IMG/VR virus record: IMGVR_UViG_3300044957_000763
Span: 186,001-250,000 of that record
Direction: 5' to 3' (one strand)
DNA: 64,000 nucleotides
Within the stretch, counting starts at the first letter, position 1; the number at the start of each line of letters is the position of its first letter. The notes beneath the pieces are model-generated. The model was not told the origin of the DNA. It worked only from the letters and a program-made list of their open reading frames with translations, and did no database searches. A program made the translations under genes and the position numbers. Shown here in pieces: positions 23,825 through 47,815 of the stretch.

Positions 23825-24133
23825 CTACATATCCACAATTGTATCTAATACAGAAGTCTTGTCTTTTACTTGAGGGTCTAATCTTGAGAATATCTTTTCT
23901 TGACCAAGTTCTGTGAGCCTGAATATTTGCACTGTCCATTGTTCAGACGATTGGCACAATCCTTCATATTTATCTTCGTAGATGATGTCGTTGTCTAGAC
24001 CCCATTGAATGCTTTCTCTCAGAAATCTGTTTCGACCAACATGACCATCGAATACGATGTAGTCTGCCTTTCCATCTCGAAACGCTCTTGTGAATGAGTC
24101 AAGATATTCTTTTTCAGTAAACTTCTGTTCCAT
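23825..24133 (-). CDS. Hypothetical protein
   Basis: 102-aa ORF. Confidence 0.65.
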   Translation of the reverse strand: MEQKFTEKEYLDSFTRAFRDGKADYIVFDGHVGRNRFLRESIQWGLDNDIIYEDKYEGLCQSSEQWTVQIFRLTELGQEKIFSRLDPQVKDKTSVLDTIVDM

Positions 24134-24140
24134 TTAAGAA

Positions 24141-24530
24141 CTATACCCGATTGCGCCATTTGTTCAGCGCATCAATAGCATTAATAACGTCTTCTGAGAG
24201 TTCAGTAGCAGTTTTGGCCTCAAGTTCTTTGATTCTTGCGATAAGTCTTGGCACTAGATTGACCGAAGCTACTGCAAGTTCGGCATTGGCTTTTGCGTTG
24301 TGGTTGTCGCCCAGAAACGTTGCCATGCATTCTTCGTAGTAAAAATTGCATTCTGGATTTCCATAACGCTCTTGCAAGTCATATGGTCCGATTTCCATGT
24401 AATCACAGTCATATTCATCTTGGCTTAATTCATTACAGAACCATGGCAATTCTGTTGCGCCCCTGATTGCTTCGTATTGCTCTATGGCTGTTGCCAAGTC
24501 AACTTCTTGTTCTTCCAGAAAATCTTCCAT
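24141..24530 (-). CDS. Hypothetical protein (Ead/Ea22-like)
   Basis: ATELPW...NAELAVASVNLVPRLIARIKELEA pattern. Confidence 0.65.
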   Translation of the reverse strand: MEDFLEEQEVDLATAIEQYEAIRGATELPWFCNELSQDEYDCDYMEIGPYDLQERYGNPECNFYYEECMATFLGDNHNAKANAELAVASVNLVPRLIARIKELEAKTATELSEDVINAIDALNKWRNRV

Positions 24531-24593
24531 AGTTTATTATGACAGATAGCAGCGCAATGCCATCTGCGGAGGAGCTTACTATGAATAGGTCTG

Positions 24594-24827
24594 TTATTTG
24601 CCGTTGCGCCGGCATTCGCGTTCACCGCTCATTCGTTGATTATCTGACACAATCACCGGAATAGTAATTGGCCAAATAAGACCGCAAAAACCAACCTCGG
24701 CAAGTAACAACCATCTGGGTTGCACCCCTCTTGCAAGTTCTGTTTTGCCTGTGTCAGAAGCCGTATACCATACGTATATTGCCACTATTTGTGCAACCAG
24801 AAGATAAAGCATTATCCATATTGACAT
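24594..24827 (-). CDS. Small membrane protein
   Basis: Two hydrophobic segments; start moved downstream of the tRNA. Confidence 0.6.
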   Translation of the reverse strand: MSIWIMLYLLVAQIVAIYVWYTASDTGKTELARGVQPRWLLLAEVGFCGLIWPITIPVIVSDNQRMSGERECRRNGK

Positions 24828-24848
24828 ATGAATAGTGTACCATAAATT

Positions 24849-24927
24849 TGGAGCGCATGACAGGAATCGAACCTGCATTTTCATCCCTTAACTTATCTAG
24901 TTTCGAAGACTAGTGGTATACATGCGC
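24849..24927 (-). tRNA. D-arm-less tRNA-Arg(UCG)-like RNA with expanded variable region
   Basis: GCGCATG/CATGCGC, 7-nt connector, CTAGT-CT TCG AA-ACTAG, 20-nt V region, T arm GCAGG-TTCGATT-CCTGT, CCA. Confidence 0.75.
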
Positions 24928-24940
24928 GTGAATTGTGACC

Positions 24941-25015
24941 TGGAGGCCGGAACGGGACTCTAACCCGCATTCTTCTCGTTTGCAGCGAGATGCTTGGACT
25001 TTTAGCTATCCGGCC
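24941..25015 (-). tRNA. tRNA-Cys(GCA)
   Basis: TCTCG-CT GCA AA-CGAGA, U73, T loop TTAGAGT. Confidence 0.85.
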
Positions 25016-25536
25016 TTCAGGTCGACACCAAGTACGTATTGTGAGTTGATAACACTCATTCCAACTTGGATTGGTTCAACGGGAAACTGTTTGGTTGCGA
25101 TAACACCCAAAAACATTGGGGATGGCAGGAAATATGCTTTGTCTTTTGGACACAAATCTGTTTCGTGTACTTCTAGCGACGGCAGTTCCTTTGCATTGTC
25201 TGGGTGAACCACCACTTGTGTACAAATTAGTTCCATATCTGAAAAGCGTGAATCAACATCGAGCATTATATTGATGTCATCTATTGACTCGCCTTTAATG
25301 GTTTCTTTCTCTGGTCTCATACTTGTGCTCTTTTCAAGCATGTCCATCAGAACTTGGTCCCAATCTATGTCGTTTTTGGTCAATGGGATGACCATTTCTT
25401 CTTGACCAGCAGACATAACTATCTTGCCTGTCATTGGACTGTATATGATTGAGATTGCCTGGTCTTGTGTTTCGTATCGCGCTAAATTGTCAAGCGGAAG
25501 TTCATCCCGCATCAATACCTTGTTGCATAATTCCAT
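25006..25536 (-). CDS. Hypothetical protein
   Basis: 176-aa ORF; stop overlaps the 5' part of tRNA-Cys. Confidence 0.65.
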   Translation of the reverse strand: MELCNKVLMRDELPLDNLARYETQDQAISIIYSPMTGKIVMSAGQEEMVIPLTKNDIDWDQVLMDMLEKSTSMRPEKETIKGESIDDINIMLDVDSRFSDMELICTQVVVHPDNAKELPSLEVHETDLCPKDKAYFLPSPMFLGVIATKQFPVEPIQVGMSVINSQYVLGVDLKAG

Positions 25537-25557
25537 GCGGTATTATGTCGAAAAATC

Positions 25558-25633
25558 TGGAGCTCCGAGTCAGAGTCGAACTGACGAATGAGGCTTTTGC
25601 AGAACCTTCCCTTGGCCGCTTGGGTACCGGAGC
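25558..25633 (-). tRNA. tRNA-Cys(GCA)
   Basis: AGGTT-CT GCA AA-AGCCT, U73, CCA. Confidence 0.9.
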
Positions 25634-25649
25634 ATAGTAAGCCGGAGCT

Positions 25650-25853
25650 TTATACCCCGGCTAGGTCGCGTTCCTCTTCAATGAGGTTTTGTGCCTCATC
25701 GTGAGAAATATCAATTGCTTGAACGATAAATCGCTCAATGTGGTTGTACGGCAACCACCTGCCTGTTTCTGCGTCGAAGACTCGAGGCACGCCGCCCTCT
25801 TCTGGGATGCGAAGCACTGAACCCTCGAGCTCGAAGTAACTTGTGTTCTTCAT
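25650..25853 (-). CDS. Hypothetical protein
   Basis: MKNTSYFELEG..., preceded by GGAGG. Confidence 0.6.
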   Translation of the reverse strand: MKNTSYFELEGSVLRIPEEGGVPRVFDAETGRWLPYNHIERFIVQAIDISHDEAQNLIEEERDLAGV

Positions 25854-25900
25854 GCTGTGCCTCCTATGCAATGTTAGTATACCACGATTTTGGTATGTTT

Positions 25901-25975
25901 TGGAGCGGGGTACGAGACTCGAACTCGTCTCTTCAGATTGGAAATCTGAGGCCCGAACCTCTAGACCAACCCCGC
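25901..25975 (-). tRNA. tRNA-Gly(UCC)
   Basis: TCAGA-TT TCC AA-TCTGA, U73, CCA. Confidence 0.9.
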
Positions 25976-26084
25976 CTGTGTTGCGCATTGATATTGCGCA
26001 ATCTATTAGACGTTATACAACGTCAAAAAGTTCCATGTTAGTCAAGTTTGTAGACTGGTTACTAGTCGCTACTCTATCGCAGAT

Positions 26085-26125
26085 TGTGTCCACGGGTGGG
26101 ATTCGAACCCACGCTCTCTTTTGAG
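26085..26125 (-). pseudogene. 3' remnant of a class II tRNA
   Basis: CTC-AAAA-GAG V-arm-like hairpin and GTGGG-TTCGAAT-CCCAC T arm; no matching 5' half found. Confidence 0.45.
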
Positions 26126-26160
26126 TTGATGAACCACATCGGTCGTACCAACATGAAATC

Positions 26161-26303
26161 TGGCCCCGCAGATGGAGTCGAACCACCCACTCGTACAAGC
26201 GATATCTCCTCAACAAGCGTTCAAGTGTGTCTTACTCAACAGCACGATGTACGTCATACTACCTTTGATAGCACTATCCAGCTTGCATCCCAGAATGCGG
26301 GGG
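26161..26303 (-). ncRNA. 143-nt tRNA-like RNA (acceptor plus T arm enclosing ~110 nt)
   Basis: CCCCGCA/TGCGGGG-CCA, GGTGG-TTCGACT-CCATC, internal helix CGTACA/TGTACG. Confidence 0.55.
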
Positions 26304-26308
26304 TAAAT

Positions 26309-26384
26309 TGGTCCTCCTGACCGGACTTGAACCGGCTACTTCCTGACAGACAATCAGGTGCTTCGACTCTTGAGCTTCAGAAGG
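26309..26384 (-). tRNA. Atypical tRNA-Asp(GUC)
   Basis: CCTGA-TT GTC TG-TCAGG; pyrimidine at position 37 and A73 are atypical for Asp. Confidence 0.6.
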
Positions 26385-26393
26385 ATAAATTGG

Positions 26394-27578
26394 CTACGCG
26401 GGCTTGATTATCTTGAGAGCTCTTTCCAAGTAAAAATCATATCGCCCTTCTTGTGAAACAATTGGTGCGCCTGGAGTGATGCCTGCGCATCCTTCCACAT
26501 ACACCCTGGCCTTATCATTGACATTATTGTGTGCCAAGTAGAAAAAGTCTTTGCTGGCTGGTCTTTCACCAATGCTGTACCATCCAAACTGCATTCCAGT
26601 AACATGAGTTCGGCAACAGTTTCGGAACGAGAACATAGCTCCTGGGGTGAACAGTCCGCTTTTTGCTCCAGTATACGGCATGAAGTCGTCAACTATCATG
26701 TCGGTGATACTGGCTGGTACGACAGTTGCCTGATATCCCCTTGAACTGCCATGCGAGAATAGAGACCCGCCGATTTCGTGTCTTCCGCCGTGAGCGTAAA
26801 ATGGGAATCCTCCATCAACTCTAAATATCAAATTGACATAGGAGGTTCCAAAATTCACCACGTACATGCCGCTACTGCCGCTATTTGGCAATTTGTCTGT
26901 TCCAAAAACATTGATGCCTATGAGACAGCCACTTGCATTGCAACTGTCCATTTTGTTTGCAAGAGTGTTTCCGCCTACGAATTGGTATCCAATATGACCT
27001 CTGTCAATTATGTCAGTGGTAATGAGTTTGTAGTCACCACCACCAATAGTATCACTATACGCTTCGCACTTAGTTAATTCTATACTAGATACATCAGCAG
27101 AGCCATTAGGCCATATTTCGTTGCTACCAACCAGGAATCCGGTGCTATTTTTACTACCGGTCATGAACTGCACTCGGCACCCCAGTAACTGCATATTGCT
27201 GGTTGATTGAACATCTGCGTCAACCCCGATTTCAAAACCTACCTGCTTATTGCCAAATGTTCGAACACAAACATCTGTGACTCTAACACGCTTAGTTCCG
27301 ATAAACCTAAACGCTGAGGTTCCATCTGCGCCTCGATAATTTATCAAATTCCAAAACGGGTCTGCAACAATATTGCCCTGTAGGTAGTCACCTGGTGTTG
27401 AAGACTTGAACGTGATGGTTTTGTCTATAGTCCACTCGCGCCCAATCCACGGAATATACAGTTGTTTTCCTGTGCCTTTATTGAACTCAGCGGCAGCAGC
27501 AAGAAACTTTTCTGTGTCTGACGCACCAGGCATTTGCGATACGTCAATGATTTTAGCGGAAGTAGTGGAGTTTAGCAT
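26394..27578 (-). CDS. Pectate-lyase-like beta-helix protein (tailspike/depolymerase-like)
   Basis: N-terminal DVSQMPGASDTEKFLAAA..QLYIP, repetitive beta-strand pattern. Confidence 0.6.
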   Translation of the reverse strand: MLNSTTSAKIIDVSQMPGASDTEKFLAAAAEFNKGTGKQLYIPWIGREWTIDKTITFKSSTPGDYLQGNIVADPFWNLINYRGADGTSAFRFIGTKRVRVTDVCVRTFGNKQVGFEIGVDADVQSTSNMQLLGCRVQFMTGSKNSTGFLVGSNEIWPNGSADVSSIELTKCEAYSDTIGGGDYKLITTDIIDRGHIGYQFVGGNTLANKMDSCNASGCLIGINVFGTDKLPNSGSSGMYVVNFGTSYVNLIFRVDGGFPFYAHGGRHEIGGSLFSHGSSRGYQATVVPASITDMIVDDFMPYTGAKSGLFTPGAMFSFRNCCRTHVTGMQFGWYSIGERPASKDFFYLAHNNVNDKARVYVEGCAGITPGAPIVSQEGRYDFYLERALKIIKPA

Positions 27579-27646
27579 GCGTCATCATTAGCCGATGACT
27601 TGTTTCATGCCTGCAAAACTCAAATCTATAGGCCATATGGCAAATC

Positions 27647-27802
27647 TTAATCTTCGTCAACAGCCTTGGATGCCCTAATGAATCTGCGCCAAAGGCTATC
27701 AATCCTCCACGAGCCTCCGCCATGTGCGGAATCGGTCTTACGATTACGAAAATGCAATCGGTCTCTTTTGCGATTGCCGTTCTTTTTCTTGTAATTAGCC
27801 AT
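27647..27802 (-). CDS. Small basic hypothetical protein (51 aa)
   Basis: Manual translation MANYKKKNGNRKRDRLHF...KAVDED. Confidence 0.45.
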   Translation of the reverse strand: MANYKKKNGNRKRDRLHFRNRKTDSAHGGGSWRIDSLWRRFIRASKAVDED

Positions 27803-27820
27803 TGTTCTTCGCTTAAAACT

Positions 27821-27896
27821 TGGCGCGGATGACGGGTACTGACCCCGCTATCTGTTGCGTGACAGGCAACCGGATTAACCATCTTCCTCCACCCGC
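27821..27896 (-). tRNA. tRNA-Asp(GUC)
   Basis: GTTGC-CT GTC AC-GCAAC, G73, CCA; atypical T loop GTCAGTA. Confidence 0.75.
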
Positions 27897-27914
27897 GCAT
27901 ATGATTGGCATTAT

Positions 27915-27994
27915 TGGTGCCGGTCAAGACCTTACTCTACATCCTCACAGAGTCTTAGACTCTGTGAGGCGCCTCTGGTTATAGAGGAACCGGC
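27915..27994 (-). ncRNA. tRNA-like RNA with double-length anticodon arm (UAA) and degenerate T arm
   Basis: GCCGGTT/GACCGGC-A-CCA, D-like CCTC/GAGG, perfect CCTCACAGAGTC/GACTCTGTGAGG hairpin. Confidence 0.5.
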
Positions 27995-28163
27995 GTTTGT
28001 TGGGGCGGCAATTGCTCACCGCCCTATTCCCTATGGATTAACTTGAACAAGTTTACTATGTCCGACCGCACCAGATTATTCTAGCTTTTCCAGTTTCGCT
28101 TGGTGGCCACAAGGTTCAGCTTCTTTTGATGTGCACTTAGCCTCACGAGCTTGTTCGAAGATG

Positions 28164-28192
28164 ATTATACCACAAGACCATTCGTTTGTCAA
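28164..28192 (-). promoter_or_regulatory. Consensus sigma70-type promoter inside the tRNA array
   Basis: TTGACA-17 nt-TATAAT with TG at the extended -10 position. Confidence 0.8.
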
Positions 28193-28206
28193 TAGTGCTT
28201 GGGTTT

Positions 28207-28431
28207 TTACACCAAAAGCACATTCATATCGTTTGGGACACGGTCTCCAGTGGCATTGTAATACGCTTCTTGTGCTTTTTGTAGCACTTCGAGCCAGTGA
28301 GCATTCTCGTCATCTGGATTAAACGCTTCGCCATCATGTGCATCGAGATATTGTTCAGTATTGTCGTTCTCAATCATCAGTCTCAATGCCGCAAGAACTT
28401 CTTCGTTGATTTCGTTCATATGTTCCATCAT
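28207..28431 (-). CDS. Hypothetical acidic protein
   Basis: 74-aa ORF. Confidence 0.55.
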   Translation of the reverse strand: MMEHMNEINEEVLAALRLMIENDNTEQYLDAHDGEAFNPDDENAHWLEVLQKAQEAYYNATGDRVPNDMNVLLV

Positions 28432-28656
28432 ACCTTATTCTTTAGGTCGATTTCCACTATAACCGTCTGTTACAAAGCAGTTTTCTGGTGCCTTTTCAAT
28501 GAAATGCTTTGCCTTGAGCGCAGAGTAAAATTTGCGTATATCGCCTTTGTAATACTGGACACCGCCATGCTTACAGTCTCGAACGCATTTGACATAGAAA
28601 ACTTTTCTATTCACACGGTTGATTTATGAGCGAATTGCGTTTTTACCTGTGAAAAA

Positions 28657-28746
28657 TGGAGGAACGGGTGGGATTCGAACCCACGGAACGCTTTCACGTT
28701 CACTTCTTTAGCAAAGAAGCTGAATAAACCTCTCTCGCACCGTTCC
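28657..28746 (-). tRNA. tRNA-Ser(GCU)
   Basis: CTTCT-TT GCT AA-AGAAG, long V-arm, CCA. Confidence 0.9.
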
Positions 28747-28752
28747 GAAATC

Positions 28753-28841
28753 TGGAGGAGAGCAACGGAATTGAACCGTAGCCACTTGCGCGGCCGTAAC
28801 GCTTTCCAGGCGTACCCCATCACCGTCAGGGATTACTCTCC
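28753..28841 (-). tRNA. tRNA-Ser(GGA)
   Basis: Loop CT GGA AA, long V-arm, CCA. Confidence 0.9.
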
Positions 28842-28861
28842 ATATTGGCATTATACAAATC

Positions 28862-28949
28862 TGGCGGAACGCAGAGTACTCGAAACTCAACCCTTTCAGG
28901 TCCCATCCCTTAGCAGGGGAGGCAGGTTCGCCTGTCCTGTTTACGCTCC
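28862..28949 (-). tRNA. tRNA-Ser(GCU)
   Basis: Loop CT GCT AA, long V-arm, G73, CCA. Confidence 0.85.
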
Positions 28950-28954
28950 ATATT

Positions 28955-29025
28955 TGGTGGCAACTTGTGGTCTCGAGCCACAACACCGGCCCTGGGGCCG
29001 GCTGTCCGTCCTACCGGACGTCGCC
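28955..29025 (-). ncRNA. 71-nt degenerate tRNA-like RNA
   Basis: GGCGAC/GTTGCC-A-CCA, TCCG/CGGA, CCGGC/GCCGG with 6-nt loop, TGTGG-CTCGAGA-CCACA. Confidence 0.45.
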
Positions 29026-29031
29026 AAATTC

Positions 29032-29120
29032 TGGCGGATAGCTGGGGAGTCGAACCCCAAAGGCCTTATCAGCTCACCTGTTTTCGAAACAGTTCCCATC
29101 ACCCATTGGGTTGGCTATCC
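29032..29120 (-). tRNA. tRNA-Ser(CGA)
   Basis: Loop TT CGA AA, long V-arm, G73, CCA. Confidence 0.9.
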
Positions 29121-29263
29121 ATTTGTTTCCGGGTGGCTCCCCACCCGGAGGTAATTCAGCGCACTGAACCACCAATTTCGACCGAAGGTCATAACGCTGT
29201 TCTCACGAACTGGCCTCGCGCCGCGACAGAGGAAGTCTTCAGTCCTCTGCAACTATTATACCA

Positions 29264-29350
29264 CGGCGGAAGCAGTGGGAATCGAACCCACGAAACCTTT
29301 CAGTTCAGGCCGCTTCAAACGGCTGTCCTCGTCCGTGCCGGGCTACTTCC
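29264..29350 (-). tRNA. tRNA-Ser(UGA)
   Basis: Loop TT TGA AG, long V-arm, G73. Confidence 0.8.
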
Positions 29351-29372
29351 GCTGTGGTTTGTTGATAAATCT

Positions 29373-29445
29373 GGAGAGGCTAACGGGAATCGAACCCGTG
29401 TCTTAACATTGGCAATGTTATGTATTACCGCTATACGATAACCTC
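29373..29445 (-). tRNA. tRNA-Gly(GCC)
   Basis: TAACA-TT GCC AA-TGTTA, U73, CCA. Confidence 0.9.
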
Positions 29446-29457
29446 GTTTTTGCTCAG

Positions 29458-29529
29458 AGCGGAAGACGGGATTCGAACCCGCAACTTCTTGCCTGGCAGG
29501 AAAGCACTCTACCATTGAGTTACATCCGC
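29458..29529 (-). tRNA. tRNA-Gly(GCC)
   Basis: GCGGATG acceptor, loop CT GCC AG, CCA not encoded. Confidence 0.8.
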
Positions 29530-29538
29530 ACTGAGCAT

Positions 29539-29907
29539 TTATTCTTCTTGTTCCATGTTTAGTTTACGACCTTCGGCTGCGCTGGTTGCAGTGTTTTTGG
29601 TTTGCCATAGACCAATTCCAATTATCGCACCTAGAATCAAGGCAAGTATCAATCCTTGTTTTATCGCACTCAACCACAGTTCCGCAGAAGACAGTTGTCC
29701 AGACCAGCTTAGTCCTGAGTGACTTCCAGGACCAATAACTGGAGCGTATTTAAGCAAGACCCATTTACCATTAACCCATAAGAATTCGTTTTCTTTGCAG
29801 CAATCACACAATTCATCTGACCACAAGTGCGCGTTACCCATTGGGCACTTTCGATATAACAGCGGTAGAACCACTGTTATCACACTTGCCATTCTGCCTG
29901 TAATCAT
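29539..29907 (-). CDS. Hypothetical membrane protein
   Basis: C-terminal hydrophobic helix; start uncertain. Confidence 0.5.
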   Translation of the reverse strand: MITGRMASVITVVLPLLYRKCPMGNAHLWSDELCDCCKENEFLWVNGKWVLLKYAPVIGPGSHSGLSWSGQLSSAELWLSAIKQGLILALILGAIIGIGLWQTKNTATSAAEGRKLNMEQEE

Positions 29908-30299
29908 CCCAGTGAAATTCCATATTCTGCCGGAAGAGCATTATATTCTGTCCATTCTGCAAAGCAACTTTTACACAGTGTCTTAAGCCACCCTGCTCGC
30001 CGGCAAAGTGCGCCTGGTTCGCCACAACATTCACATGTCTTTGCGGCTAACTTTTCTGCCCCTTCGATAATTTCATACACTTGGTCAAAAACATTTTCTT
30101 GTAAAGCACCAATGTAGTAACGCAATCCACCGAACTTTTCCTTGATTTGCAAGATTGTGTAATCAGGTGCCAGCTTTCTAATGTCTTTGTCAAGCTGTGC
30201 AATGATTGGATACCAACCAGCATCGCATTCAAGAAAAACATTTCTTCGACCGCCGTCCCAATGGTGTTTAAGTTGTTGCTCAAGTTGTTCTTTGGTCAT
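29904..30299 (-). CDS. Conserved phage hypothetical protein
   Basis: CDAGWYPII...QIKEKFGGLRYY...CECCG...WLKTLC. Confidence 0.75.
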   Translation of the reverse strand: MTKEQLEQQLKHHWDGGRRNVFLECDAGWYPIIAQLDKDIRKLAPDYTILQIKEKFGGLRYYIGALQENVFDQVYEIIEGAEKLAAKTCECCGEPGALCRRAGWLKTLCKSCFAEWTEYNALPAEYGISLG

Positions 30300-30308
30300 T
30301 GTTTTCCT

Positions 30309-30746
30309 CTAAGGTGTATTGATTCCAGCAAGGCCAAGCAATCTTTCCTGCTCGGCAATTGGCAACTTCTTGAATTGCTCTGACAATGATTCCACTTTCT
30401 TTTTTCTTTTCTCTCTTTGCTCTTGTGCCTTGCGTTTCTTGTCCCACTTTTGATGTTTTTCCCACCAGTCAGCAAGAGACCGCGCATTGGCATTCTTTCC
30501 ATCGTAGATGTACTTGTCTTGTTCGGCCGCAGACATGATTCTGATTGTACTGCACAGCAATGCAGTCCAGTTGTCTACTTCTGACTGATTGCCATAATAC
30601 TCACTCGCGGCGGTTTTCCATGCATCAGTTTCAGCCTTAGTGGGTTTCAGTCCGATAGCAGGAAGCAAATACAAAAGATGACCAGCAACACGCTTCGACT
30701 CTGCTTGGCGTGCGTTTGGTTCGGAGTAATCTGTACGACATGGCAT
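30309..30746 (-). CDS. Conserved phage hypothetical protein
   Basis: MPCRTDYSEP...LADWWEKHQKWDKKR; start moved downstream of the tRNA. Confidence 0.7.
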   Translation of the reverse strand: MPCRTDYSEPNARQAESKRVAGHLLYLLPAIGLKPTKAETDAWKTAASEYYGNQSEVDNWTALLCSTIRIMSAAEQDKYIYDGKNANARSLADWWEKHQKWDKKRKAQEQREKRKKKVESLSEQFKKLPIAEQERLLGLAGINTP

Positions 30747-30799
30747 AACATAACCATTATAACACACTGGTTTCAAGTTGTCAAGTGCCTTTGTAAATT

Positions 30800-30875
30800 T
30801 GGCGCCCCAGGACGGACTCGAACCGCCGTCTCTTACGTTCGAAGCGTAAGTTTCTATCCACTGAATTACTGGGGC
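30800..30875 (-). tRNA. tRNA-Arg(UCG)
   Basis: TTACG-CT TCG AA-CGTAA, CCA. Confidence 0.9.
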
Positions 30876-30881
30876 AAATTT

Positions 30882-30968
30882 TGGTGGCTCTCCCCGGACT
30901 CGAACCGGGACGCTTTGTGGGCACGATATTTTGAGTATCGCATGTACTACCAATTTCATCAGAGAGCC
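30882..30968 (-). tRNA. tRNA-Leu(CAA), with V-arm
   Basis: CGATA-CT CAA AA-TATCG, A73, CCA. Confidence 0.9.
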
Positions 30969-30974
30969 GAAATC

Positions 30975-31049
30975 TGGAGGCCGGGGTGGGACTCTAACCC
31001 ACGCTCTTTCACTTTGCAGGCGAACGCCTTAACACTTGGCTACCCGGCC
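30975..31049 (-). tRNA. tRNA-Cys(GCA)
   Basis: TTCGC-CT GCA AA-GTGAA, T loop TTAGAGT, U73, CCA. Confidence 0.85.
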
Positions 31050-31064
31050 GGTTGTTCTTAAATT

Positions 31065-31148
31065 TGGTGCCGCACCTCGGAATCGAACCGAGACAAGAGG
31101 ATGATTTTAAGTCATTTGCTTTTACCAGTTTAGCTACTCCAGTGCGGC
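31065..31148 (-). tRNA. tRNA-Leu(UAA) with 5-nt insertion after the acceptor stem and no V-arm
   Basis: GCCGCAC-TGGAG-TA-D arm; loop CT TAA AA; V region CTCTTGT. Confidence 0.75.
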
Positions 31149-31173
31149 ATTGTTTATATGTAAGCGCAAAACT

Positions 31174-31250
31174 TGGTGCTCCTACTCAGATTCGAACTGA
31201 GACTTTCATAGGTTTGAGCTATGTGACTCTACCAATTGGCCTATAGGAGC
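31174..31250 (-). tRNA. tRNA-Leu(CAA) lacking V-arm
   Basis: CATAG-CT CAA AC-CTATG, 5-nt V loop, A73, CCA. Confidence 0.85.
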
Positions 31251-31252
31251 AT

Positions 31253-31338
31253 TGGTGCGGATGAGAGGACTTGAACCTCCAAGGGGTTTCCCCCACAGCC
31301 GTCTCAGGACTGCGCGTTTACCATTTCGCCACATCCGC
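31253..31338 (-). tRNA. tRNA-Leu(GAG)
   Basis: Loop CT GAG AC, V-arm, CCA. Confidence 0.9.
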
Positions 31339-31343
31339 AAAAT

Positions 31344-31427
31344 TGGACCGGGTAAAAGGACTTGAACCTTCACGTCTTTCGACAAATGCTCCTAAGGCAT
31401 TCGCGGCTACCGTTACGCCATACCCGG
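31344..31427 (-). tRNA. tRNA-Leu(UAG)
   Basis: AATGC-CT TAG GA-GCATT, V-arm, U73 (atypical). Confidence 0.85.
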
Positions 31428-31431
31428 ATTT

Positions 31432-31517
31432 TGGTCTCGATGACCGGATTTGAACCAGCACGCTTTGTGGGCGCTACCACCTCAAGGTAGTGCGTCTACC
31501 AATTTCGCCACATCGAG
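31432..31517 (-). tRNA. tRNA-Leu(GAG)
   Basis: CTACC-TT GAG GT-GGTAG, V-arm, CCA. Confidence 0.85.
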
Positions 31518-31523
31518 ATATTT

Positions 31524-31601
31524 TGGTCCCCCCTGCGAGACTCGAACTCGCAATACTTTCGGTTCTGAGCCGAACGACTTTACCAATTTGCCCAAAGGGG
31601 G
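31524..31601 (-). tRNA. tRNA-Leu(CAG) lacking V-arm
   Basis: TTCGG-CT CAG AA-CCGAA, short V loop, CCA. Confidence 0.85.
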
Positions 31602-39587: not shown

Positions 39588-41930
39588 TCATACTTTGTCA
39601 TTAGTTATTTTTTTGATTTCATGATTGATTTTGACTGGATAACGAATCGGCCTATCGTTGATTATTGTTTTTTCGTGCTTCTCTGATTCCAAAAGCAATT
39701 TATCTTTTTGTTTTCTGGATATAGATTCTTCGTGATGCCTGAGTTTTATGGGAGTAAGAATTCTTTGGTAGTCCGCATGGGTGTCATAGTTCCATATGTA
39801 TCCAGCGCAGTTTTTAGGACCAGCAAATGGTCTTTCTTTATTTACCATACCTGTCTTTTGTGCCCTAAGAGTATAGTCTATGTGCTCGCTACCATAAAAC
39901 CCAAAATCAGTACACAATCCGCCGAGCGCGTCGTACATTGATTTCGTGAAGAACAATAAAGCACCATATGCTTTGTTATAGCACTCTATTCCATTGGGCT
40001 GTTCAGTAATAGTGTTGTGATAATTGTTTCCGTACAACAAATGCTGGTACCCACTTTGTTGGTGTGCGTCAATATATAGCTCCATCCAACCGTTGTCTAT
40101 TGGAAATGTATCGTCATCAAATAGAAAATAGTAACTGTAAGAATCTCCTAACAAATACAGGCAACTGTTTTTTGCCTGAGCGATACCAACCTGCTCCGCT
40201 CCATAATAATAGTTGTCATCCAGTTCGTACTTCTTTACGATTGCCTGATTCTTCAATCTTAGTGCCGGGTCGCTTGCGTCGTCGTAAATTACAAGGTGTT
40301 TTAATTGGTCTTCAGTGCTGTATGTCTTGAAGTGCAGTAAACACGCGTCCAGCATATCTGGCCTATTACGTGTTGTAATGGCTATTCCTGAATTTGCTGT
40401 TATGTGTTGCAAGACTATGTTTTGATTGCACTCGAGATTATCATTGGGTAATCCAACATAGTCTACTTCTGGTATGTCGAATAATACATTGTATTCTGGG
40501 GGGCAGTAAACATAAATTCTTGACAAAGGCATGTTTCTTCGCTTTTCTTTGATTTGCTTGAGTGCGCTAATAGAGTTGTGTATTGGTCCGTTAAAATGAA
40601 GTGAAACATGCACTCCAAATCCAAGATAACCATATCTGTCTGCAAACAATTGTTTGTTGTCTAAAATGTATTTTTGTAAATTAGGTAACAGTTTTGACGT
40701 TTGTCCTTGTAGGTGCCTCATGGTGTTTGGCACTCCTGTCCATGTGTATCCTTTTAATCTGGCTCGACACGACCAATCGGTGTCTTCAAAATAGGCCATC
40801 TCATAGCTTTCATCAAATTCTCCAATGTTAAACCACACATCGCGCCTAAAAAACAACGCTTCTCCATTCGCATAGTCGCTATTTGCGAAATGCAAAGTCT
40901 GTGTTCCACCAATAAAGTTCGGGCTTGCTTTCATCATACTGGCGCATGATATACCACTTCGAATTGCCTCGGTATACAGTCTTGCAATACCACCAGGAAA
41001 TAACTCAACATCATTGTTGAGAACTGCTAATACTTTACCAGTTGCTTGATTCAATCCAGCATTCCATGCCCTTGAAACACCCTCATTCTTGGTGTTGTCA
41101 ATGACCTTGACACCTGATAGCGTTTTCAGCCATTGCCTAGTGCCGTCCGTGCTGGCATTATTTACTACAATGATTTCAGAACACGGGGCTTCTGTTTTTA
41201 ACTGCTCAAGCAGTTTTTGGGTACAAAATATGTTGTTGTAAACAGCAATTACAATAGATAACTCAGGCAACAGCTTAGACTGATGTGCGCGTATGTTATC
41301 ACTATTGTTTTTGCTTTGGTACCAATACCAGCGATACATATTCAGGTTGTCTTTGAAACTTTGGGTGTGTGGGTTTCCGGGTGATAAATGTTGCACTTTA
41401 ATATCGCATACCCAATTGTAATACCCCATGTCCTCGGTTTGTCTACACATCCACGCATCTAATAAATGAATGCCAGGCAATATTTCCGGGAACATCAACC
41501 TTTTGTCAGTAACCATGAAAACAGCATCTATAGTTCGGGCCATGCAATCCGTTTGACCGAAACACAACCACTCTCCTTGTTCCTTGACCCCGCCAAGGAA
41601 TGAATTTGCAGATTCATTGAACCATACTCCTCTTTGGTTGTTATTGACAGTACCTGCAATTCCAGCGAGTCCAATTTCTGGATGTTTTGCAAAAGTGCCA
41701 ATCACCTTTGCTGTGAAATTTTCGTCAATTAAGCGGGCATCTTGATGGCAATACACAAGGTACCTGCCCTTGGCTTGTTCGGTGCCTGCGTTATATGCCT
41801 GTGACATAGACTGATATTCTTGACCAAGTTCTATAAACTCGCAATCGACACCATCAAAAGACGCCACCATATCTTGATACAGTTCTTGATTGTTGACCCA
41901 ACTGATTACACTAAATAGAGGCGGCCGCAT
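39588..41930 (-). CDS. Multi-domain glycosyltransferase (glycosyltransferase-like plus two GT2 domains)
   Basis: YNAG..AKGRYLVYCHQD; IVVNNASTDGT..NEGVSRAWNAG..LNNDV; YFEDTDW; GIAQAKN..FLFDDDT. Confidence 0.9.
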   Translation of the reverse strand: MRPPLFSVISWVNNQELYQDMVASFDGVDCEFIELGQEYQSMSQAYNAGTEQAKGRYLVYCHQDARLIDENFTAKVIGTFAKHPEIGLAGIAGTVNNNQRGVWFNESANSFLGGVKEQGEWLCFGQTDCMARTIDAVFMVTDKRLMFPEILPGIHLLDAWMCRQTEDMGYYNWVCDIKVQHLSPGNPHTQSFKDNLNMYRWYWYQSKNNSDNIRAHQSKLLPELSIVIAVYNNIFCTQKLLEQLKTEAPCSEIIVVNNASTDGTRQWLKTLSGVKVIDNTKNEGVSRAWNAGLNQATGKVLAVLNNDVELFPGGIARLYTEAIRSGISCASMMKASPNFIGGTQTLHFANSDYANGEALFFRRDVWFNIGEFDESYEMAYFEDTDWSCRARLKGYTWTGVPNTMRHLQGQTSKLLPNLQKYILDNKQLFADRYGYLGFGVHVSLHFNGPIHNSISALKQIKEKRRNMPLSRIYVYCPPEYNVLFDIPEVDYVGLPNDNLECNQNIVLQHITANSGIAITTRNRPDMLDACLLHFKTYSTEDQLKHLVIYDDASDPALRLKNQAIVKKYELDDNYYYGAEQVGIAQAKNSCLYLLGDSYSYYFLFDDDTFPIDNGWMELYIDAHQQSGYQHLLYGNNYHNTITEQPNGIECYNKAYGALLFFTKSMYDALGGLCTDFGFYGSEHIDYTLRAQKTGMVNKERPFAGPKNCAGYIWNYDTHADYQRILTPIKLRHHEESISRKQKDKLLLESEKHEKTIINDRPIRYPVKINHEIKKITNDKV

Positions 41931-42784: not shown

Positions 42785-42797
42785 TGTATAATCATAT

Positions 42798-42879
42798 TGT
42801 CTCATATTGGGGAATCTGGTGAGAATCCAGAACTGTATCGCAACGGTGTGTTGAAAGACGAGTCCGAATGCCAGAGACT
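42798..42879 (+). promoter_or_regulatory. Cobalamin riboswitch (compact)
   Basis: GGGAA-TCTGG-TGAGAAT-CCAGA-ACTG...CGCAACGGT...GAGTCCGAA-TGCC core; P1 GTCTC/GAGAC; TATAAT at 42787; SD-sequestering hairpin ACCCTC/GAGGGT downstream. Confidence 0.8.
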
Positions 42880-42958
42880 ATAATGCAAACCGCGAGTTAC
42901 GGTTGGGCTAGTTGAATCTGTTTGATTTCAACCCTCAATTTCACTCACGGAGGGTAAC

Positions 42959-44239
42959 ATGAAACAAAAAACTAACTGGATTCACCTCGCTGTCATTTTT
43001 TCAATGACGCTTCTTTGTCGATTGATGCCACATGAATGGGGTTGGGCACCCACCGTCGCCATGAGTGTGTTATCAACATGCTTGTTTGGTCTGCTGGCAT
43101 TACTCCCAATTTTGCTCGGGCAATTTTGCTCAGACCTTTATTTTGGATTTTACGATGCGCCGGCTATGATTGGGACATATGCCGGATATGTTATGGCTGG
43201 CATATGTGGTATTTGGGCTGGAAAAAAGCAGCAAACATTATCAACGATTGGCTTTGCGTTTACTGCATCTTCCGGCTTTTTTGTCTTGTCTAATTTTGGG
43301 GTTTGGATGACTCCGTATTATGAACACACTTTACAAGGTCTCTCAAATTGCTATGTGGCGGCTCTGCCGTTCTGGAAAAATCAACTCGTAGCTGATTTGT
43401 TTTTGTCAACAGCGACAGCGTTGATGTTGTTCTACAGACCAAAGACGAAGCCAATATATACAATGGCTCGTCGCAAAGCTGGTTTTACGCTCATAGAACT
43501 ACTCGTAGTCATTGCAATCATCTCGACTCTGGCTGCAATCCTCTTCCCTGTCTTTTCTCAGACTAAAGCGGCCGCGAAAAAGACTCAGTCGATTGCATAT
43601 ATCAAACAAATCAATCTGGCAAGCATGATGTACACAAATGACAATGATGGTATATTGATGCGTGACCACATCAATGGCAATGGCAAAACATACTATTGGT
43701 GGGGGAGTTGGGATGGTTCTGTATTGAACCAACAAGAAAGCTATCTTTATCCATACACAAAGAATCATGAAATAGCCAAAGACCCTGTTTTCCCAGATAC
43801 ATTCAGGACTGCACTTGGCCTAACTGGATATGGCTACAACTATGCATATTTGTCTCCTAGTAATTACGACTCAAACTGGAATGAAATACCAGTGTCAGTA
43901 TCTGATACGAGTGCCGGAAGTCCTATTGAGACAATCACATTCGCCACTGCTGCGCGCATTAACAACTGGTCTTTCAGTACATGGAAACTAGAGGGCAATG
44001 CGCTCATTGACCCACCTAGCTACGAATTCCCAGGAGTACATGCGAGACACGTTGGAAACAAAGCGATTTTGGCCTGGCTTGATGGTCACGCAAGTTCAAT
44101 CAGTGTGACTCAGAGAAGCCAAGCATTTGGATATGGATTTATCCCAGACTGGTTTGTTAAGTCCAATCTGGGCGATGTTATAAAGTCTGGTTGTGGCTTT
44201 GGTTCAGTCTGTCAGGACTACTACTACGACCTCGACTGA
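42959..44239 (+). CDS. Fusion of DUF6580-like membrane protein and prepilin-type N-terminal cleavage/methylation domain protein
   Basis: CRLMPHEWGWAPTVAM...FFVLSNFGVW...CYVAALPFWKNQL, then in frame RRKAGFTLIELLVVIAIISTLAAILFPVF...LAWLDGHA. Confidence 0.85.
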   Translation: MKQKTNWIHLAVIFSMTLLCRLMPHEWGWAPTVAMSVLSTCLFGLLALLPILLGQFCSDLYFGFYDAPAMIGTYAGYVMAGICGIWAGKKQQTLSTIGFAFTASSGFFVLSNFGVWMTPYYEHTLQGLSNCYVAALPFWKNQLVADLFLSTATALMLFYRPKTKPIYTMARRKAGFTLIELLVVIAIISTLAAILFPVFSQTKAAAKKTQSIAYIKQINLASMMYTNDNDGILMRDHINGNGKTYYWWGSWDGSVLNQQESYLYPYTKNHEIAKDPVFPDTFRTALGLTGYGYNYAYLSPSNYDSNWNEIPVSVSDTSAGSPIETITFATAARINNWSFSTWKLEGNALIDPPSYEFPGVHARHVGNKAILAWLDGHASSISVTQRSQAFGYGFIPDWFVKSNLGDVIKSGCGFGSVCQDYYYDLD

Positions 44240-44240
44240 G

Positions 44241-45413
44241 TTACTTGACGCCGAATACCGACTTCAGATACCTGAGGTATTCGGCGTCTTCACAAGTGGC
44301 CTTTTCGGGTTCGTCGCTGATTTTTGCTACGGGCTGACCGTTGCAACTTGCCATCTTCATTACAATGCTTACTGGCTTTACGTCGTCTCGGCATTTGTTG
44401 GTCAGATATGTTCCGATTCCACACGAGACGTTGATTTGGTCTCCCCATGTTTTGGTCAAATCGAAGGCACGTTCAAAATCAAGATTGTCGCTTGGAATCG
44501 CGGATTTCGTCTTAGGGTCGATGCGTAAAGACTTGTAGTGTCGGATAACTTTGTCAATAGTTACGTCCATATCACCAGAGTCAAGACGACATCCATCGTA
44601 CAGCTTGGCCAAATAAAGGTCAAAGTCATTCAAGAACGCATCAATGCCTATAGTATCGGTGAGTGCGTATCCAAGGTCGCCCCTGTATTCTGAAGACCAC
44701 GCTTCAAGCATGTATTTCTGGTGATTGGCAAGCCTGGTTTGCGGCATTCCTTGTCCGGCCATAATCCACTGATGTGCCATTGTGCCGATAGGATTTAGCC
44801 CATATTTCATGGCGAAGTAAACGTTTGATGTACCCACGAGGTGTTCGCCACACTGTCGCTTTAGGTCTTGCACAACTTGTTCGTGCCATGCTCGAGAAAG
44901 CCTTCGGCGGGTTCCAAATTCAGAGAATCTAAAATTCCCTGGCGCACGCATTTTGAATAGGTTAAGTTTTCGATTTTGGATTTCTTGGTCGCCCAGTGCA
45001 TCCGCAACACCGCACTGCATCTCTGTGTTTAATTCGCTCACAATAGCTAAGATTGGCACTTCCCAGTAAATGTTGTGCAGCCAACTTCCTGTTGCTGAAA
45101 TCTTTAGTTCACCCGAATCGTCTACGCGAACTGTAACATTTTCAGGGTTCGGTCTGAACATCCTCAAAAATTCAACATAGTCGCGCTTGATAAAACGCAA
45201 ACTGCCGATGAAGTCAAGTTCATCCTTGGTGTATGACAAGTCTCCCAATGCATTGATTTCATCACGAACTCGATTGGCTAATTTGTCCAGTCCGGCGCGT
45301 GGTGTGCGACAATTGAACTCGAAACGTGTTTGAGCTGCTGGGAATTGATGCAAAACTGCTTGTTGCATCGTACAAACATACAAATCCAAGTCTGCCAGTG
45401 AGCGGATAATCAT
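44241..45413 (-). CDS. pncB: Nicotinate phosphoribosyltransferase
   Basis: LADLDLY, EFGTRRR, GTSNV, GTMAHQW, ALTDT, RLDSGD, SDNLD, GIGT, KISDEPEKA. Confidence 0.95.
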   Translation of the reverse strand: MIIRSLADLDLYVCTMQQAVLHQFPAAQTRFEFNCRTPRAGLDKLANRVRDEINALGDLSYTKDELDFIGSLRFIKRDYVEFLRMFRPNPENVTVRVDDSGELKISATGSWLHNIYWEVPILAIVSELNTEMQCGVADALGDQEIQNRKLNLFKMRAPGNFRFSEFGTRRRLSRAWHEQVVQDLKRQCGEHLVGTSNVYFAMKYGLNPIGTMAHQWIMAGQGMPQTRLANHQKYMLEAWSSEYRGDLGYALTDTIGIDAFLNDFDLYLAKLYDGCRLDSGDMDVTIDKVIRHYKSLRIDPKTKSAIPSDNLDFERAFDLTKTWGDQINVSCGIGTYLTNKCRDDVKPVSIVMKMASCNGQPVAKISDEPEKATCEDAEYLRYLKSVFGVK

Positions 45414-46804: not shown

Positions 46805-47815
46805 AGCACTTTGACAGTTTAATAGAATTTCGGCGGTATGGCGTCGGACAAAAAGATATTGCATCGCAAGATGCAGAAAGGGACCAGGTTCTTCAGACCC
46901 CCGCCTTGTAAGTTCGCTTATGAGGTCAGCCATGCAAGTCCAACTTCCTTGGGTTTCGCGCTTCACGGTGCGGAACTAAGCCCCCGCGAAGGGGCGCGAC
47001 AGAAGATGGAGGATAAATGTTGTCAGTGGCCTGGCCGACGGTGAAGCCATTGACAATCATGACACGGCAGTGTCATAAAACCTCACGCAAAACATCGGTG
47101 TCTAAGAAGTCAAGGATAGCCTCGGGGTTCGAGTTGTTGCAGACAAGGGCTTCGTGAGATTTACCTTCGGGTACTTCTTTAGCATAACCAAAGGCAAGAG
47201 CATTGCGGTATAGAATGTAACAGTGGTTACACACTGACCTATTCCATGATGCAGGCGTCTTGAAGTTGAGCAGAGTAGCACGGCAATGTGAAATGTAATA
47301 TTCGGCGTGTTGTATTCGGTAGACCGAAAGGTTTATGGAGCAGCAGCGCGCGCACGTCGAACTGAAGTAGCAAACTAGCTCATTCGGTAGAGCAGTTCCT
47401 TTCAACGGAACAGGTAGTTGGTTCAAGCCCAACGCTTGCAAAAATGCGAAAGCCGCGTGCCGCACAAAACGAAAATGGCTTACTTCCTGAGTGGCAACAT
47501 GTCAGGAGCGACGACAACTCGCAAGGTTGTGGTTGTGTTGGTGAGAACGAAAGATGGTGGGGAGCCCCCCTTTACTGCCCGGCAGGGTAGACGGCAATTA
47601 GAACTTGCTCAGTAGTTTTGTGAACAGGCTCGATAAGCCAATCGAGCATAAACAATGGCAGTCATGCCGACTGACTGGTAGCAATACCAGTGGACAAGCT
47701 GGCAAGCGATGCGCAGACATCGTGTAATCCAGTATGGCGAGTCGGATATGTAGGTGTAGTCTCGACCTGCATGCAGTCCCAGAACCCTGGCCTTGTGTCA
47801 GAGTTCTGGGACTTT
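46805..47815 (+). ncRNA. Giant structured ncRNA, GOLLD-like
   Basis: TGTGTATAAT at 46789-46798; ~1 kb rich in UUCG/GNRA-capped hairpins; embedded tRNA-like element; intrinsic terminator at the 3' end. Confidence 0.65.
47369..47441 (+). tRNA. tRNA-like element with UCA anticodon embedded in the giant ncRNA
   Basis: GCTC-ATTCGGTA-GAGC D arm, GTTCC-TT TCA AC-GGAAC, GTTGG-TTCAAGC-CCAAC; acceptor 5/7 paired, no CCA. Confidence 0.6.

Follow-up and report, generated by a model that had tools for sequence, protein, structure and literature searches.

A cobalamin riboswitch leader and a transporter-like/pilin-like fusion gene in a huge phage

The window analysed here is a 64,000-nucleotide stretch (positions 186,001 to 250,000) of the 478,840-bp genome of a lake-water phage, IMG/VR record IMGVR_UViG_3300044957_000763; coordinates refer to this stretch. 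On its plus strand lies a single open reading frame of 426 amino acids (42959-44239), preceded by a structured leader. The assignment of the genome to a virus rests on the IMG/VR record (direct terminal repeats, CheckV 100%), on the tRNA array and on the huge-phage gene content of the relatives, since a Terminase_6N search of the genome and a PHROGs scan of nine neighbouring ORFs found nothing. Downstream, a 13-bp perfect inverted repeat (44247-44289) separates the fusion gene from a convergent NAPRTase gene and resembles a terminator hairpin, although it was not called by a terminator scan because it lacks a T run.

The leader contains a match to the Rfam family AdoCbl-II (RF01689, clan CL00101) at 42796-42881 (+), 78 nt upstream of the ATG. 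It scores 40.7 bits against a gathering score of 36.5 over the full model (positions 1-81 of 81), with an E-value of 2.9e-6 over the whole window and 2.3e-8 locally, and it is the only such match in the phage genome. Three nucleotides upstream is a promoter-like -10 box, TGTATAAT, at 42785-42792. A GTATAWT-like box is found at the same place in six related leaders, whilst a sigma-70 consensus scan did not call the box because no -35 match is present; its role as a promoter element is inferred from sequence. A cobalamin-clan match lies upstream of every phage-type homologue whose DNA could be read, namely the loci labelled L002, L003, L004, L005, L127, L128 and L147. In an alignment of only seven leaders, helices P1, P3 and P5 of the aptamer show compensatory changes: 85.3% of cells are paired against 77.1% in shuffles, and nine pairs change on both sides, values reached in none of 500 shuffles. 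Slid controls give 35-51% paired against 85%.

Three hairpins follow the aptamer. The first, H1 (42888-42904; AACCG, loop CGAGUUA, CGGUU), is almost invariant in the seven leaders, with one compensatory CG to UA change in L127; it may be a kissing-loop partner or part of an alternative pairing. The second, H2 (42911-42932), is formed by GUUGAA and UUCAAC, and a hairpin at this place is predicted in all seven leaders, each with a different sequence. In the third, H3 (42931-42955), ACCCUC (42931-42936) pairs with GAGGGU (42950-42955) and covers the Shine-Dalgarno (SD) sequence GGAGGG (42949-42954), which ends 4 nt before the ATG at 42959. The equivalent helix in L128 is 10 bp long and has a different sequence.

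It had been proposed in a preliminary description of the locus that H2 competes with the SD-sequestering hairpin. This is not supported, as H2 overlaps H3 by only 2 nt here and the equivalent hairpin in L005 does not overlap it at all; H2 is instead a conserved structural hairpin. Three other candidate contacts were recorded, none of which is established. The aptamer sequence UUGGGG (42807-42812) could pair with the anti-SD CCUCAA (42933-42938), with six of six pairs in four leaders and a compensatory change in L127. GUGAG in L5 could form a kissing pair with CUCAC in the H3 loop in four of seven leaders, without covariation. Finally, GAGU in the H1 loop and ACUC in the H3 loop, read by eye from the leader alignment, appear to covary in L127 and L128. 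A secondary-structure ensemble calculation gave the same SD accessibility with and without the aptamer helices enforced in six of seven leaders, so the switching step is not explained by this model and may need a tertiary contact, as in other class II cobalamin riboswitches.

The ORF is one open frame. Its N-terminal part (42965-43417, residues 3-153) matches DUF6580 (PF20221) with an E-value of 4.8e-29 and 102 bits against a cut-off of 27, confirmed on the genome at 105 bits. It is followed by a class III (prepilin) signal and alpha-1N helix (43469-43546), which matches PF07963 N_methyl at residues 171-196 (33 bits against a cut-off of 21.2) and TIGR02532 (29.5 bits against 16.3). The signal reads RRKAG|FTLIELLVV, with predicted cleavage between G175 and F176 (nucleotides 43481-43486) and E180 at +5. 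The remainder (43547-44236) is a pilin-like, presumably periplasmic domain with the motif H364-X10-D375-G376-H377 (residues 364-377, nucleotides 44048-44089); the bacterial relatives have X9 in place of X10.

The fusion is real. Eight further protein clusters, 45-85% identical and from different samples, carry both Pfam domains. The junction had been singled out beforehand as the place where a hidden stop codon might lie, but contigs from two independent lake-water runs, spanning 42802-43576 and 43396-43564 respectively, cross it with no differences. Together with the 426 open codons and the strong domain scores, this refutes an assembly or sequencing artefact, or a decaying gene, for which no evidence was found. 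Across the nine fusions, F at +1, T at +2, L at +3 and E at +5 are invariant and G at -1 is present in eight, the exception (P0011) having A, while the adjoining linker varies freely; with the unchanged junction, this supports a fusion under selection. An internal start at M169, which would give an ordinary prepilin beginning MARRKAG|F, was rejected because this methionine is not conserved in the other fusions. Searches of GenBank phages by tblastn and blastn, and protein and pattern scans of IMG/VR, found no relatives of the fusion apart from the window's own record.

The DUF6580 domain is predicted to fold as an ECF-transporter S-component. An AlphaFold2 model with a pLDDT of 92 was compared with solved structures using VIA-align, in which 18 S-components scored Z 11.3-14.7 with 147-157 of 170 residues aligned, led by ThiT (14.7) and with the B12 transporter BtuM at 13.5-13.7; scores then dropped to 8.3 and 7, with the next unrelated folds at 7 or less. 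The top Foldseek hits were BtuM structures 8c7p and 8ovv, at a TM-score of 0.62. At the sequence level, the only PDB hit of a DUF6580 profile was the 182-residue chain of 6FNP (ECF-CbrT), a weak match (E 0.0043, 20 bits) confined to profile positions 5-85, the first half of the domain, and the single phage sequence gave no hit to it. No sequence hit to BtuM was obtained. The basic residues K88-K89 and RPKTK...RRK fit a six-helix topology with both termini inside. The phage domain is only 26-33% identical to the bacterial sequences aligned with it, and up to 41% in local alignments.

The pilin-like domain is 54-59% identical to single-copy orthologues in Armatimonadota. Neither PF07596 (SBP_bac_10) nor TIGR04294 was hit by the phage protein at E<=1, whereas relatives at 54-59% identity and the bacterial operon partners do hit PF07596, as do look-alikes in the ESM Atlas. 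Thousands of homologues of this domain exist. An AlphaFold model of it built from 30 sequences was too poor for a fold search (pLDDT 57.7), and a prediction of its complex with the DUF6580 domain gave a score of 0.01, which is not evidence either way.

A scan of a genome collection with the pilin-like alignment was saturated by the generic pilin N-terminus and returned only distant paralogues, so searches were made within phyla. An orthologue was found at E<=1e-50 in 53 of 301 Armatimonadota genomes, as one copy in 51 of them. Of 30 loci retrieved, 25 have RF00174 or RF01689 upstream on the same strand at E<=0.01, 19 of which reach the gathering score, and 28 have one if weak hits are counted. 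For DUF6580 the association holds only sometimes: a cobalamin riboswitch was found within 1.5 kb at three of 20 genome loci (L125, L126 and L131) and on one metagenome contig (L185). Only one of 17 DUF6580 loci from Verrucomicrobiota and Planctomycetota had one within this distance, and the family as a whole need not be B12-specific. A metagenome pattern scan hit a generic cobalamin core in front of many gene types, of which only L181 (pilin-like) and L185 (DUF6580) were relevant.

In four bacterial loci the two parts are adjacent separate genes. The order is riboswitch, pilin-like, DUF6580, BtuF-like in L125 and riboswitch, pilin-like, DUF6580 in L131, a Planctomycete, while the pilin-like gene is also followed by DUF6580 in L124 and L135. 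In L126 a riboswitch precedes DUF6580 and a BtuF-like gene. A BtuF-like gene follows the pilin-like gene in L101, L103 and L122, and CobU follows it directly in L109. In the phage, the only ribonucleotide reductase is the B12-dependent NrdJ, which matches TIGR02504 at 454 bits against a cut-off of 400; no NrdB gene was found.

Taken together, the observation made in the preliminary description, of a cobalamin aptamer in front of a DUF6580/prepilin-signal fusion, is confirmed. Its interpretation as a phage-encoded B12 scavenger is supported in part: the aptamer, the SD-sequestering hairpin, the DUF6580 identity, the intact class III signal and the fusion all held, and its statement that such genes occur under B12 riboswitches in bacteria proved correct for the pilin-like gene and sometimes correct for DUF6580. 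The scavenger reading is strengthened by the predicted S-component fold with its BtuM and CbrT matches, by the bacterial operons with BtuF-like and CobU genes and by the phage NrdJ. The competing hairpin was not supported, and the suggested cutting of the fusion by prepilin peptidase remains pure inference.

The best explanation, held with moderate confidence, is that this is a B12-repressed vitamin B12 (corrinoid) acquisition gene. What the analysis demonstrates is an aptamer of the AdoCbl-II class followed by a hairpin that buries the SD, a gene encoding an S-component-like six-helix membrane domain joined through a basic cytoplasmic linker to a complete prepilin signal and a pilin-like domain, the membership of bacterial counterparts of both halves in B12 riboswitch regulons, and a sole ribonucleotide reductase that needs adenosylcobalamin. 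Ligand binding, regulation, transport and cleavage are inferred. In this view, when corrinoid is scarce in the infected cell the SD is left free and the fusion is made; the DUF6580 part inserts with both termini in the cytoplasm, and the pilin helix crosses outwards to place the globular domain in the periplasm. That domain would capture B12 and pass it to the permease-like part, raising the supply of cofactor for NrdJ while a 479-kb genome is replicated. When B12 is plentiful the aptamer would fold, the SD would stay paired and translation would stop. Some evidence argues against this reading. This includes the unchanged SD accessibility in the ensemble calculation, the scarcity of cobalamin riboswitches at DUF6580 loci of Verrucomicrobiota and Planctomycetota, the low identity of the phage domain to the bacterial sequences, and the invariant Cys131 of DUF6580, which does not lie where BtuM has its cobalt-ligating cysteine. 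Solitary CbrT did not support growth without its ECF module (PMC5997447), and the phage has no EcfT. Moreover, related phages carry the riboswitch and the pilin-like gene without DUF6580 (L005 and L147; the protein P0010 is a deletion derivative), so that the transporter half is dispensable and the pilin-like half, not the pair, is the constant element.

Cleavage by a host prepilin peptidase at G175|F176, giving equal amounts of permease and mature pilin-like protein, is possible but thought somewhat less likely than not. The alternative, that the same function is served by an uncut fusion, is also tentative. Here the pilin alpha-1 helix would be a seventh transmembrane anchor tethering a binding domain to the permease, as in ABC importers with fused substrate-binding domains, and the conserved G, F and E residues would simply be inherited from the pilin ancestor. 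No Peptidase_A24 gene is present in the 479-kb phage genome, prepilin leaders are typically about 5-30 residues long and a 175-residue, six-helix leader is not known to have a precedent, and one fusion lacks G at -1. Furthermore, fusing DUF6580 before the pilin, the reverse of the bacterial gene order, gives a covalent tether with the right topology. Against this, the signal residues are kept whilst the linker next to them varies, and hosts of this group have many prepilin-type proteins (132 first-look candidates in the genome G001, 12 of them at E<=1e-20), from which a host peptidase is presumed. The host is expected to belong to the Fimbriimonadaceae/Armatimonadota.

It is less likely that the cargo is a precursor or another corrinoid, such as cobinamide or pseudo-B12, or that the module works in remodelling or salvage rather than simple import. 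In favour of this, CobU (cobinamide kinase/guanylyltransferase) lies beside the orthologue in L109, CbrT and BtuM also take cobinamide (PMC5997447, PMC6072759), and the BtuF-like neighbours begin at position 1 of the Peripla_BP_2 profile, leaving no room for a signal peptide, so they may be cytoplasmic. However, no CobU, CobA, PduO or other salvage gene was found in the phage among the families searched, and it would depend wholly on the host to finish any precursor.

It is also unlikely that the pilin-like protein acts on the host surface or pilus machinery, for example in superinfection exclusion, adhesion or interference with type IV pili or type II secretion, with the riboswitch a regulatory passenger captured with the host gene. 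The pilin-like half is kept by all related phages, with or without DUF6580, second pilin-like genes lie next to it in L003 and L005, and PHROGs files phage pilins under moron / host takeover. Nevertheless, the riboswitch structure is kept by compensatory changes across phage lineages whose proteins have diverged to 45% identity, so B12-responsive control is itself under selection, and the bacterial orthologues are single-copy, riboswitch-controlled and linked to BtuF-like, CobU and DUF6580 genes.

A more speculative possibility, held with fairly low confidence but not excluded, is that Armatimonadota and the PVC phyla have an undescribed kind of B12 uptake system in which a type IV pilin-like H-X9-DG protein is the periplasmic, or pseudopilus-borne, B12-capturing subunit, working with a solitary S-component-like permease (DUF6580). 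A lineage of huge phages would have captured it with its riboswitch and welded the two genes into one precursor, the whole permease acting as a giant leader peptide removed by the host prepilin peptidase. This would give the first function for any member of the very large H-X9-DG/DUF1559 family. The fusion acts as a Rosetta stone, linking two families without known function, DUF6580 and a single-copy subgroup of the H-X9-DG/DUF1559 pilin-like proteins, to each other and to B12, and yields a testable proposal for how Armatimonadota and some PVC bacteria take up B12. If cleaved, it would represent a new way of using the prepilin peptidase. Literature searches on DUF6580, on H-X9-DG proteins and on links between DUF1559, prepilins or pilins and cobalamin or its riboswitches found nothing relevant.

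Phage-borne riboswitches exist, for example glutamine riboswitches in marine myophages, but are described as rare in phages (PMC9004378), and no report of a phage cobalamin riboswitch or phage B12 importer was found in the library searched. The element described here would let a virus sense a host cofactor and adjust an auxiliary uptake gene to feed its own B12-dependent reductase. Like class II cobalamin riboswitches (AdoCbl-II, formerly AdoCbl-variant; env8-type), it has a compact aptamer without the large peripheral extension, in the 5' leader of a B12-related gene with the SD in a downstream hairpin, which fits a translational OFF switch; it differs in being encoded by a phage and in having three leader hairpins. 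This class prefers aquo- and methylcobalamin over AdoCbl.

The pilin-like half shares with the H-X9-DG/DUF1559 (PF07596, TIGR04294) prepilin-type proteins of Planctomycetota, Verrucomicrobiota and Armatimonadota an N-terminal methylation signal, a length of about 250 residues and a C-terminal H-X9-DG-H-type motif, in this case with one extra residue. A B12-riboswitch-controlled, single-copy orthologous group within that family is, as far as our searches show, undescribed. The Sulfolobus 'bindosome' would work alike, in that solute-binding proteins carry a prepilin-type signal and are processed by the prepilin peptidase, but it is archaeal, serves sugar ABC transporters, has no sequence relation to this protein and is not fused to the permease.

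BtuM of Thiobacillus denitrificans (PMC6072759), a solitary S-component-like B12 transporter, shares the predicted fold and small size of the DUF6580 domain. It too is found in genomes without an ECF module: PF02361 (EcfT/CbiQ) was absent from the phage and was not found in three of four DUF6580-bearing MAGs searched, although MAGs may be incomplete. BtuM is proteobacterial and is not fused to anything. Its cobalt-ligating Cys80 lies in loop 3 and has no shown equivalent in DUF6580, which has invariant residues of its own (D59, N112, P137 and C131, the last in the final helix region) and a near-invariant RLxPH. CbrT, the cobalamin-specific S-component of ECF-CbrT (PDB 6FNP; PMC5997447), needs the EcfT/EcfA module for transport. 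It binds both Cbl and Cbi, and its gene lies in an nrdJ cluster, the same logic of B12 uptake for NrdJ that is proposed for this phage.

The window, bases 186001-250000, comes from a 478,840-bp virus record from lake water that has direct terminal repeats and is rated complete. The AdoCbl-II model of Rfam (RF01689) matches at 42796-42881 (+) over its full length with 40.7 bits, against a gathering score of 36.5, and this is the only such match in the genome. Three bases upstream lies TGTATAAT. The aptamer is followed by three hairpins: H1 (AACCG/CGGUU) at 42888-42904, H2 (GUUGAA/UUCAAC) at 42911-42932 and H3 (ACCCUC/GAGGGU) at 42931-42955. H3 buries the SD GGAGGG, which lies 4 nt before the ATG at 42959. 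The ORF at 42959-44239 encodes 426 residues without a stop. It comprises DUF6580 at residues 3-153 (E 4.8e-29), a variable basic linker, a complete prepilin signal, RRKAG175|F176TLIE180LLVV, for which both PF07963 and TIGR02532 score above their cut-offs, and a domain of about 230 residues ending in H-X10-DG-H.

The surrounding genome has the character of a huge phage far from characterised phages. An array of 26 tRNA genes occupies 19080-31601 on the minus strand, with one more at 47369-47441 (+), which fits a huge phage carrying its own translation supplements. A GOLLD-like large RNA (RF02032) lies at 47300-47768 (+), scoring 112.9 bits, and at 10434-10903 of the syntenic relative L002, scoring 129 bits; both are below the gathering score of 150 but have E of about 1e-31 to 1e-34, and a tRNA gene is embedded in each. 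Converging on the fusion gene, at 44241-45413 (-), is a nicotinate phosphoribosyltransferase gene (PF04095 and PF17767), a second cofactor-related (NAD salvage) auxiliary gene next to the B12 module, whose only DNA similarity in GenBank phages is to two 735-kb uncultured phages. A 780-residue protein with at least two glycosyltransferase family 2 domains is encoded at 39588-41930 (-) and is conserved next to the locus in L002 and L004, two of the related phage loci. Of the ten larger neighbouring ORFs tested between 32000 and 52000, nine have no PHROGs match at E<=1e-5, and a Terminase_6N search of the genome was also negative.

The fusion itself is real. Eight other protein clusters, 45-85% identical and from other samples, carry both Pfam domains; across the nine fusions F+1, T+2, L+3 and E+5 are invariant and G-1 is kept in 8 of 9, whilst the linker varies in length and sequence. 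The junction had been singled out beforehand for re-checking against reads, and contigs from two other lake-water runs cross it with no difference, X4 at 42802-43576 and X5 at 43396-43564.

A cobalamin-clan match is found in the same place at every phage-type homolog whose DNA could be read, scoring 40.6 bits at L002, 44.2 at L003, 30.2 at L004, 38.7 at L005, 36.6 at L127, 46.7 at L128 and 44.6 at L147. On an alignment of seven leaders, P1, P3, P5 and H1 show compensatory changes; P5, for example, is UCUGG/CCAGA in the window, GGGGG/CCUCC in L127 and CUCGG/CCGAG in L128. Overall, 85.3% of cells pair against 77.1% in shuffles and nine pairs change on both sides, values that none of 500 shuffles reaches, whilst slid controls give 35-51%. 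The SD-sequestering helix is kept with a different sequence in L128, where it is 10 bp long. In the preliminary description H2 was taken to be a hairpin competing with H3. H2 is a conserved structure, however it overlaps H3 by only 2 nt here and not at all in L005, so it cannot be the anti-sequestering element. The switch could not be identified: an ensemble calculation gave the same SD accessibility with and without the aptamer enforced in 6 of the 7 leaders, and three other possible contacts are no more than candidates.

An AlphaFold model of the N-terminal half, built from 36 sequences, has a pLDDT of 92. The two best Foldseek matches to this model are BtuM with cyano- and hydroxocobalamin (TM 0.62-0.63), and VIA-align places 18 ECF S-components at Z 11.3-14.7 (ThiT 14.7, BtuM 13.7), with a drop to 8.3 and 7 below them. 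By sequence, the family profile finds one solved protein, the 182-residue chain of 6FNP (E 0.0043); 6FNP is ECF-CbrT, the cobalamin ECF transporter (PMC5997447). DUF6580 is therefore, on its predicted fold, an S-component-like protein with a weak but specific link to the B12 S-components. The placement of the basic residues fits six helices with both ends in the cytoplasm, which is the topology that a following prepilin signal needs.

Beyond the pilin alpha-1 helix, the C-terminal half matches nothing solved, and a structural model of it was too poor to use. Its relatives are very many (7,869 hits). The closest bacterial ones, at 54-59% identity, are from Fimbriimonadaceae/Armatimonadota and often carry PF07596 (DUF1559). 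In a sample of 301 Armatimonadota genomes, 53 have an ortholog at E<=1e-50, with one copy in 51 of them. Of the 30 loci fetched, 25 have RF00174 or RF01689 directly upstream on the same strand at E<=0.01, of which 19 reach the gathering score, and 3 more have weak matches. Genes downstream in these Armatimonadota loci include those for BtuF-like Peripla_BP_2 proteins (L101, L103, L117 and L122), CobU (L109) and small PEP-CTERM proteins (L120, L121 and L123). In four Armatimonadota loci, L120 (848-1477, -), L121 (857-1453, -), L123 (2242-2862, +) and L124 (622-1494, +), a protein of 200-290 residues with a PEP-CTERM sorting signal directly follows the B12-riboswitch-controlled pilin-like gene, and it may be a further surface component of the same system.

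DUF6580 is rare in Armatimonadota, being found in 3 of the 301 genomes, but all three loci are informative. In L125 the order is riboswitch, pilin-like, DUF6580, BtuF-like; in L124 it is pilin-like, PEP-CTERM protein, DUF6580, BtuF-like; and in L126 it is riboswitch, DUF6580, BtuF-like. The BtuF-like proteins next to DUF6580 (L124 2086-3090, L125 2222-3172 and L126 517-1464 (-)) start at position 1 of the Peripla_BP_2 Pfam profile within their first 4 residues; they therefore seem to lack a signal peptide and may be cytoplasmic B12-binding proteins. A Planctomycete (L131) has riboswitch, pilin-like, DUF6580, and a Verrucomicrobium (L135) has pilin-like followed by DUF6580. Thus, the parts are neighbours as separate genes in three phyla, always in the order pilin-like then DUF6580. 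The phage fusion has the opposite order, so it is not a simple read-through. Nevertheless, the other 12 of the 17 DUF6580 loci from the latter two phyla showed no riboswitch, pilin-like or BtuF-like gene within 1.5 kb of DUF6580 on the operon strand, and the family need not be B12-specific throughout.

In a quick tree of the pilin-like domains, all nine fusions and six unfused proteins (P0008, P0010, P0012-14 and P0021) form one clade with support 98, apart from 72 bacterial-type sequences, and fused and unfused forms are interleaved within it. P0008 (at L005) and P0021 (at L147) lie on huge-phage-like contigs of 161 kb and 129 kb, respectively, with the riboswitch directly in front of the pilin-like gene. 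P0010 begins MKQKT, like the fusions, and then runs straight into the signal; it is a deletion derivative. The riboswitch plus the pilin-like gene is thus the constant unit, and the DUF6580 part has been lost more than once. Around its riboswitch-controlled pilin-like gene, the L147 contig (1-16780) carries ribosomal protein L12, EF-G domain fragments, an alanyl-tRNA-synthetase fragment, PHO4/PhoU and a LAGLIDADG endonuclease. The related phage contigs at L003 (3999-4389, -) and L005 (5090-5442, -) encode a tmRNA (83 and 139 bits) just upstream of the riboswitch locus, along with GroEL/GroES, DNA ligase and NUDIX genes. In the same two phages a second, different prepilin-type gene (284-287 residues, with a C-terminal DGH motif) lies beside the riboswitch-controlled one, at L003 4843-5697 (-) and L005 6765-7628 (-), whereas the genome of the window has none.

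A reason for a phage to carry such a gene may lie in its nucleotide metabolism. The only ribonucleotide reductase large subunit found in the genome is a 901-residue class II NrdJ, which depends on adenosylcobalamin (TIGR02504, 454 bits against a cut-off of 400); it is encoded outside the window (G000:C1:426896-428647; locus L129, 1129-3834), and no NrdB gene was found. Searches of the phage for a B12-binding domain, PduO, CobA, a BtuF-like protein, EcfT and a prepilin peptidase also found nothing.

The observation made in the preliminary description, of a B12 riboswitch preceding a DUF6580-prepilin fusion, is thus confirmed. Its interpretation is supported in part: the reading as a B12-acquisition gene is the best supported and is held with moderate confidence, whereas the proposed competing hairpin does not stand. 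The riboswitch match, its covarying helices and the intact fusion are established by the analysis, but ligand binding, regulation by B12 and B12 uptake rest on genomic inference only. Cleavage of the fusion by a host prepilin peptidase, likewise an inference, is plausible, although it can be suggested only tentatively. In the library searched, no description was found of a phage cobalamin riboswitch, of DUF6580 or of B12-regulated pilin-like proteins, and riboswitches have been noted to be rare in phages (PMC9004378). As to the pairing of B12 uptake with NrdJ, CbrT itself lies in an nrdJ cluster in Lactobacillus (PMC5997447).
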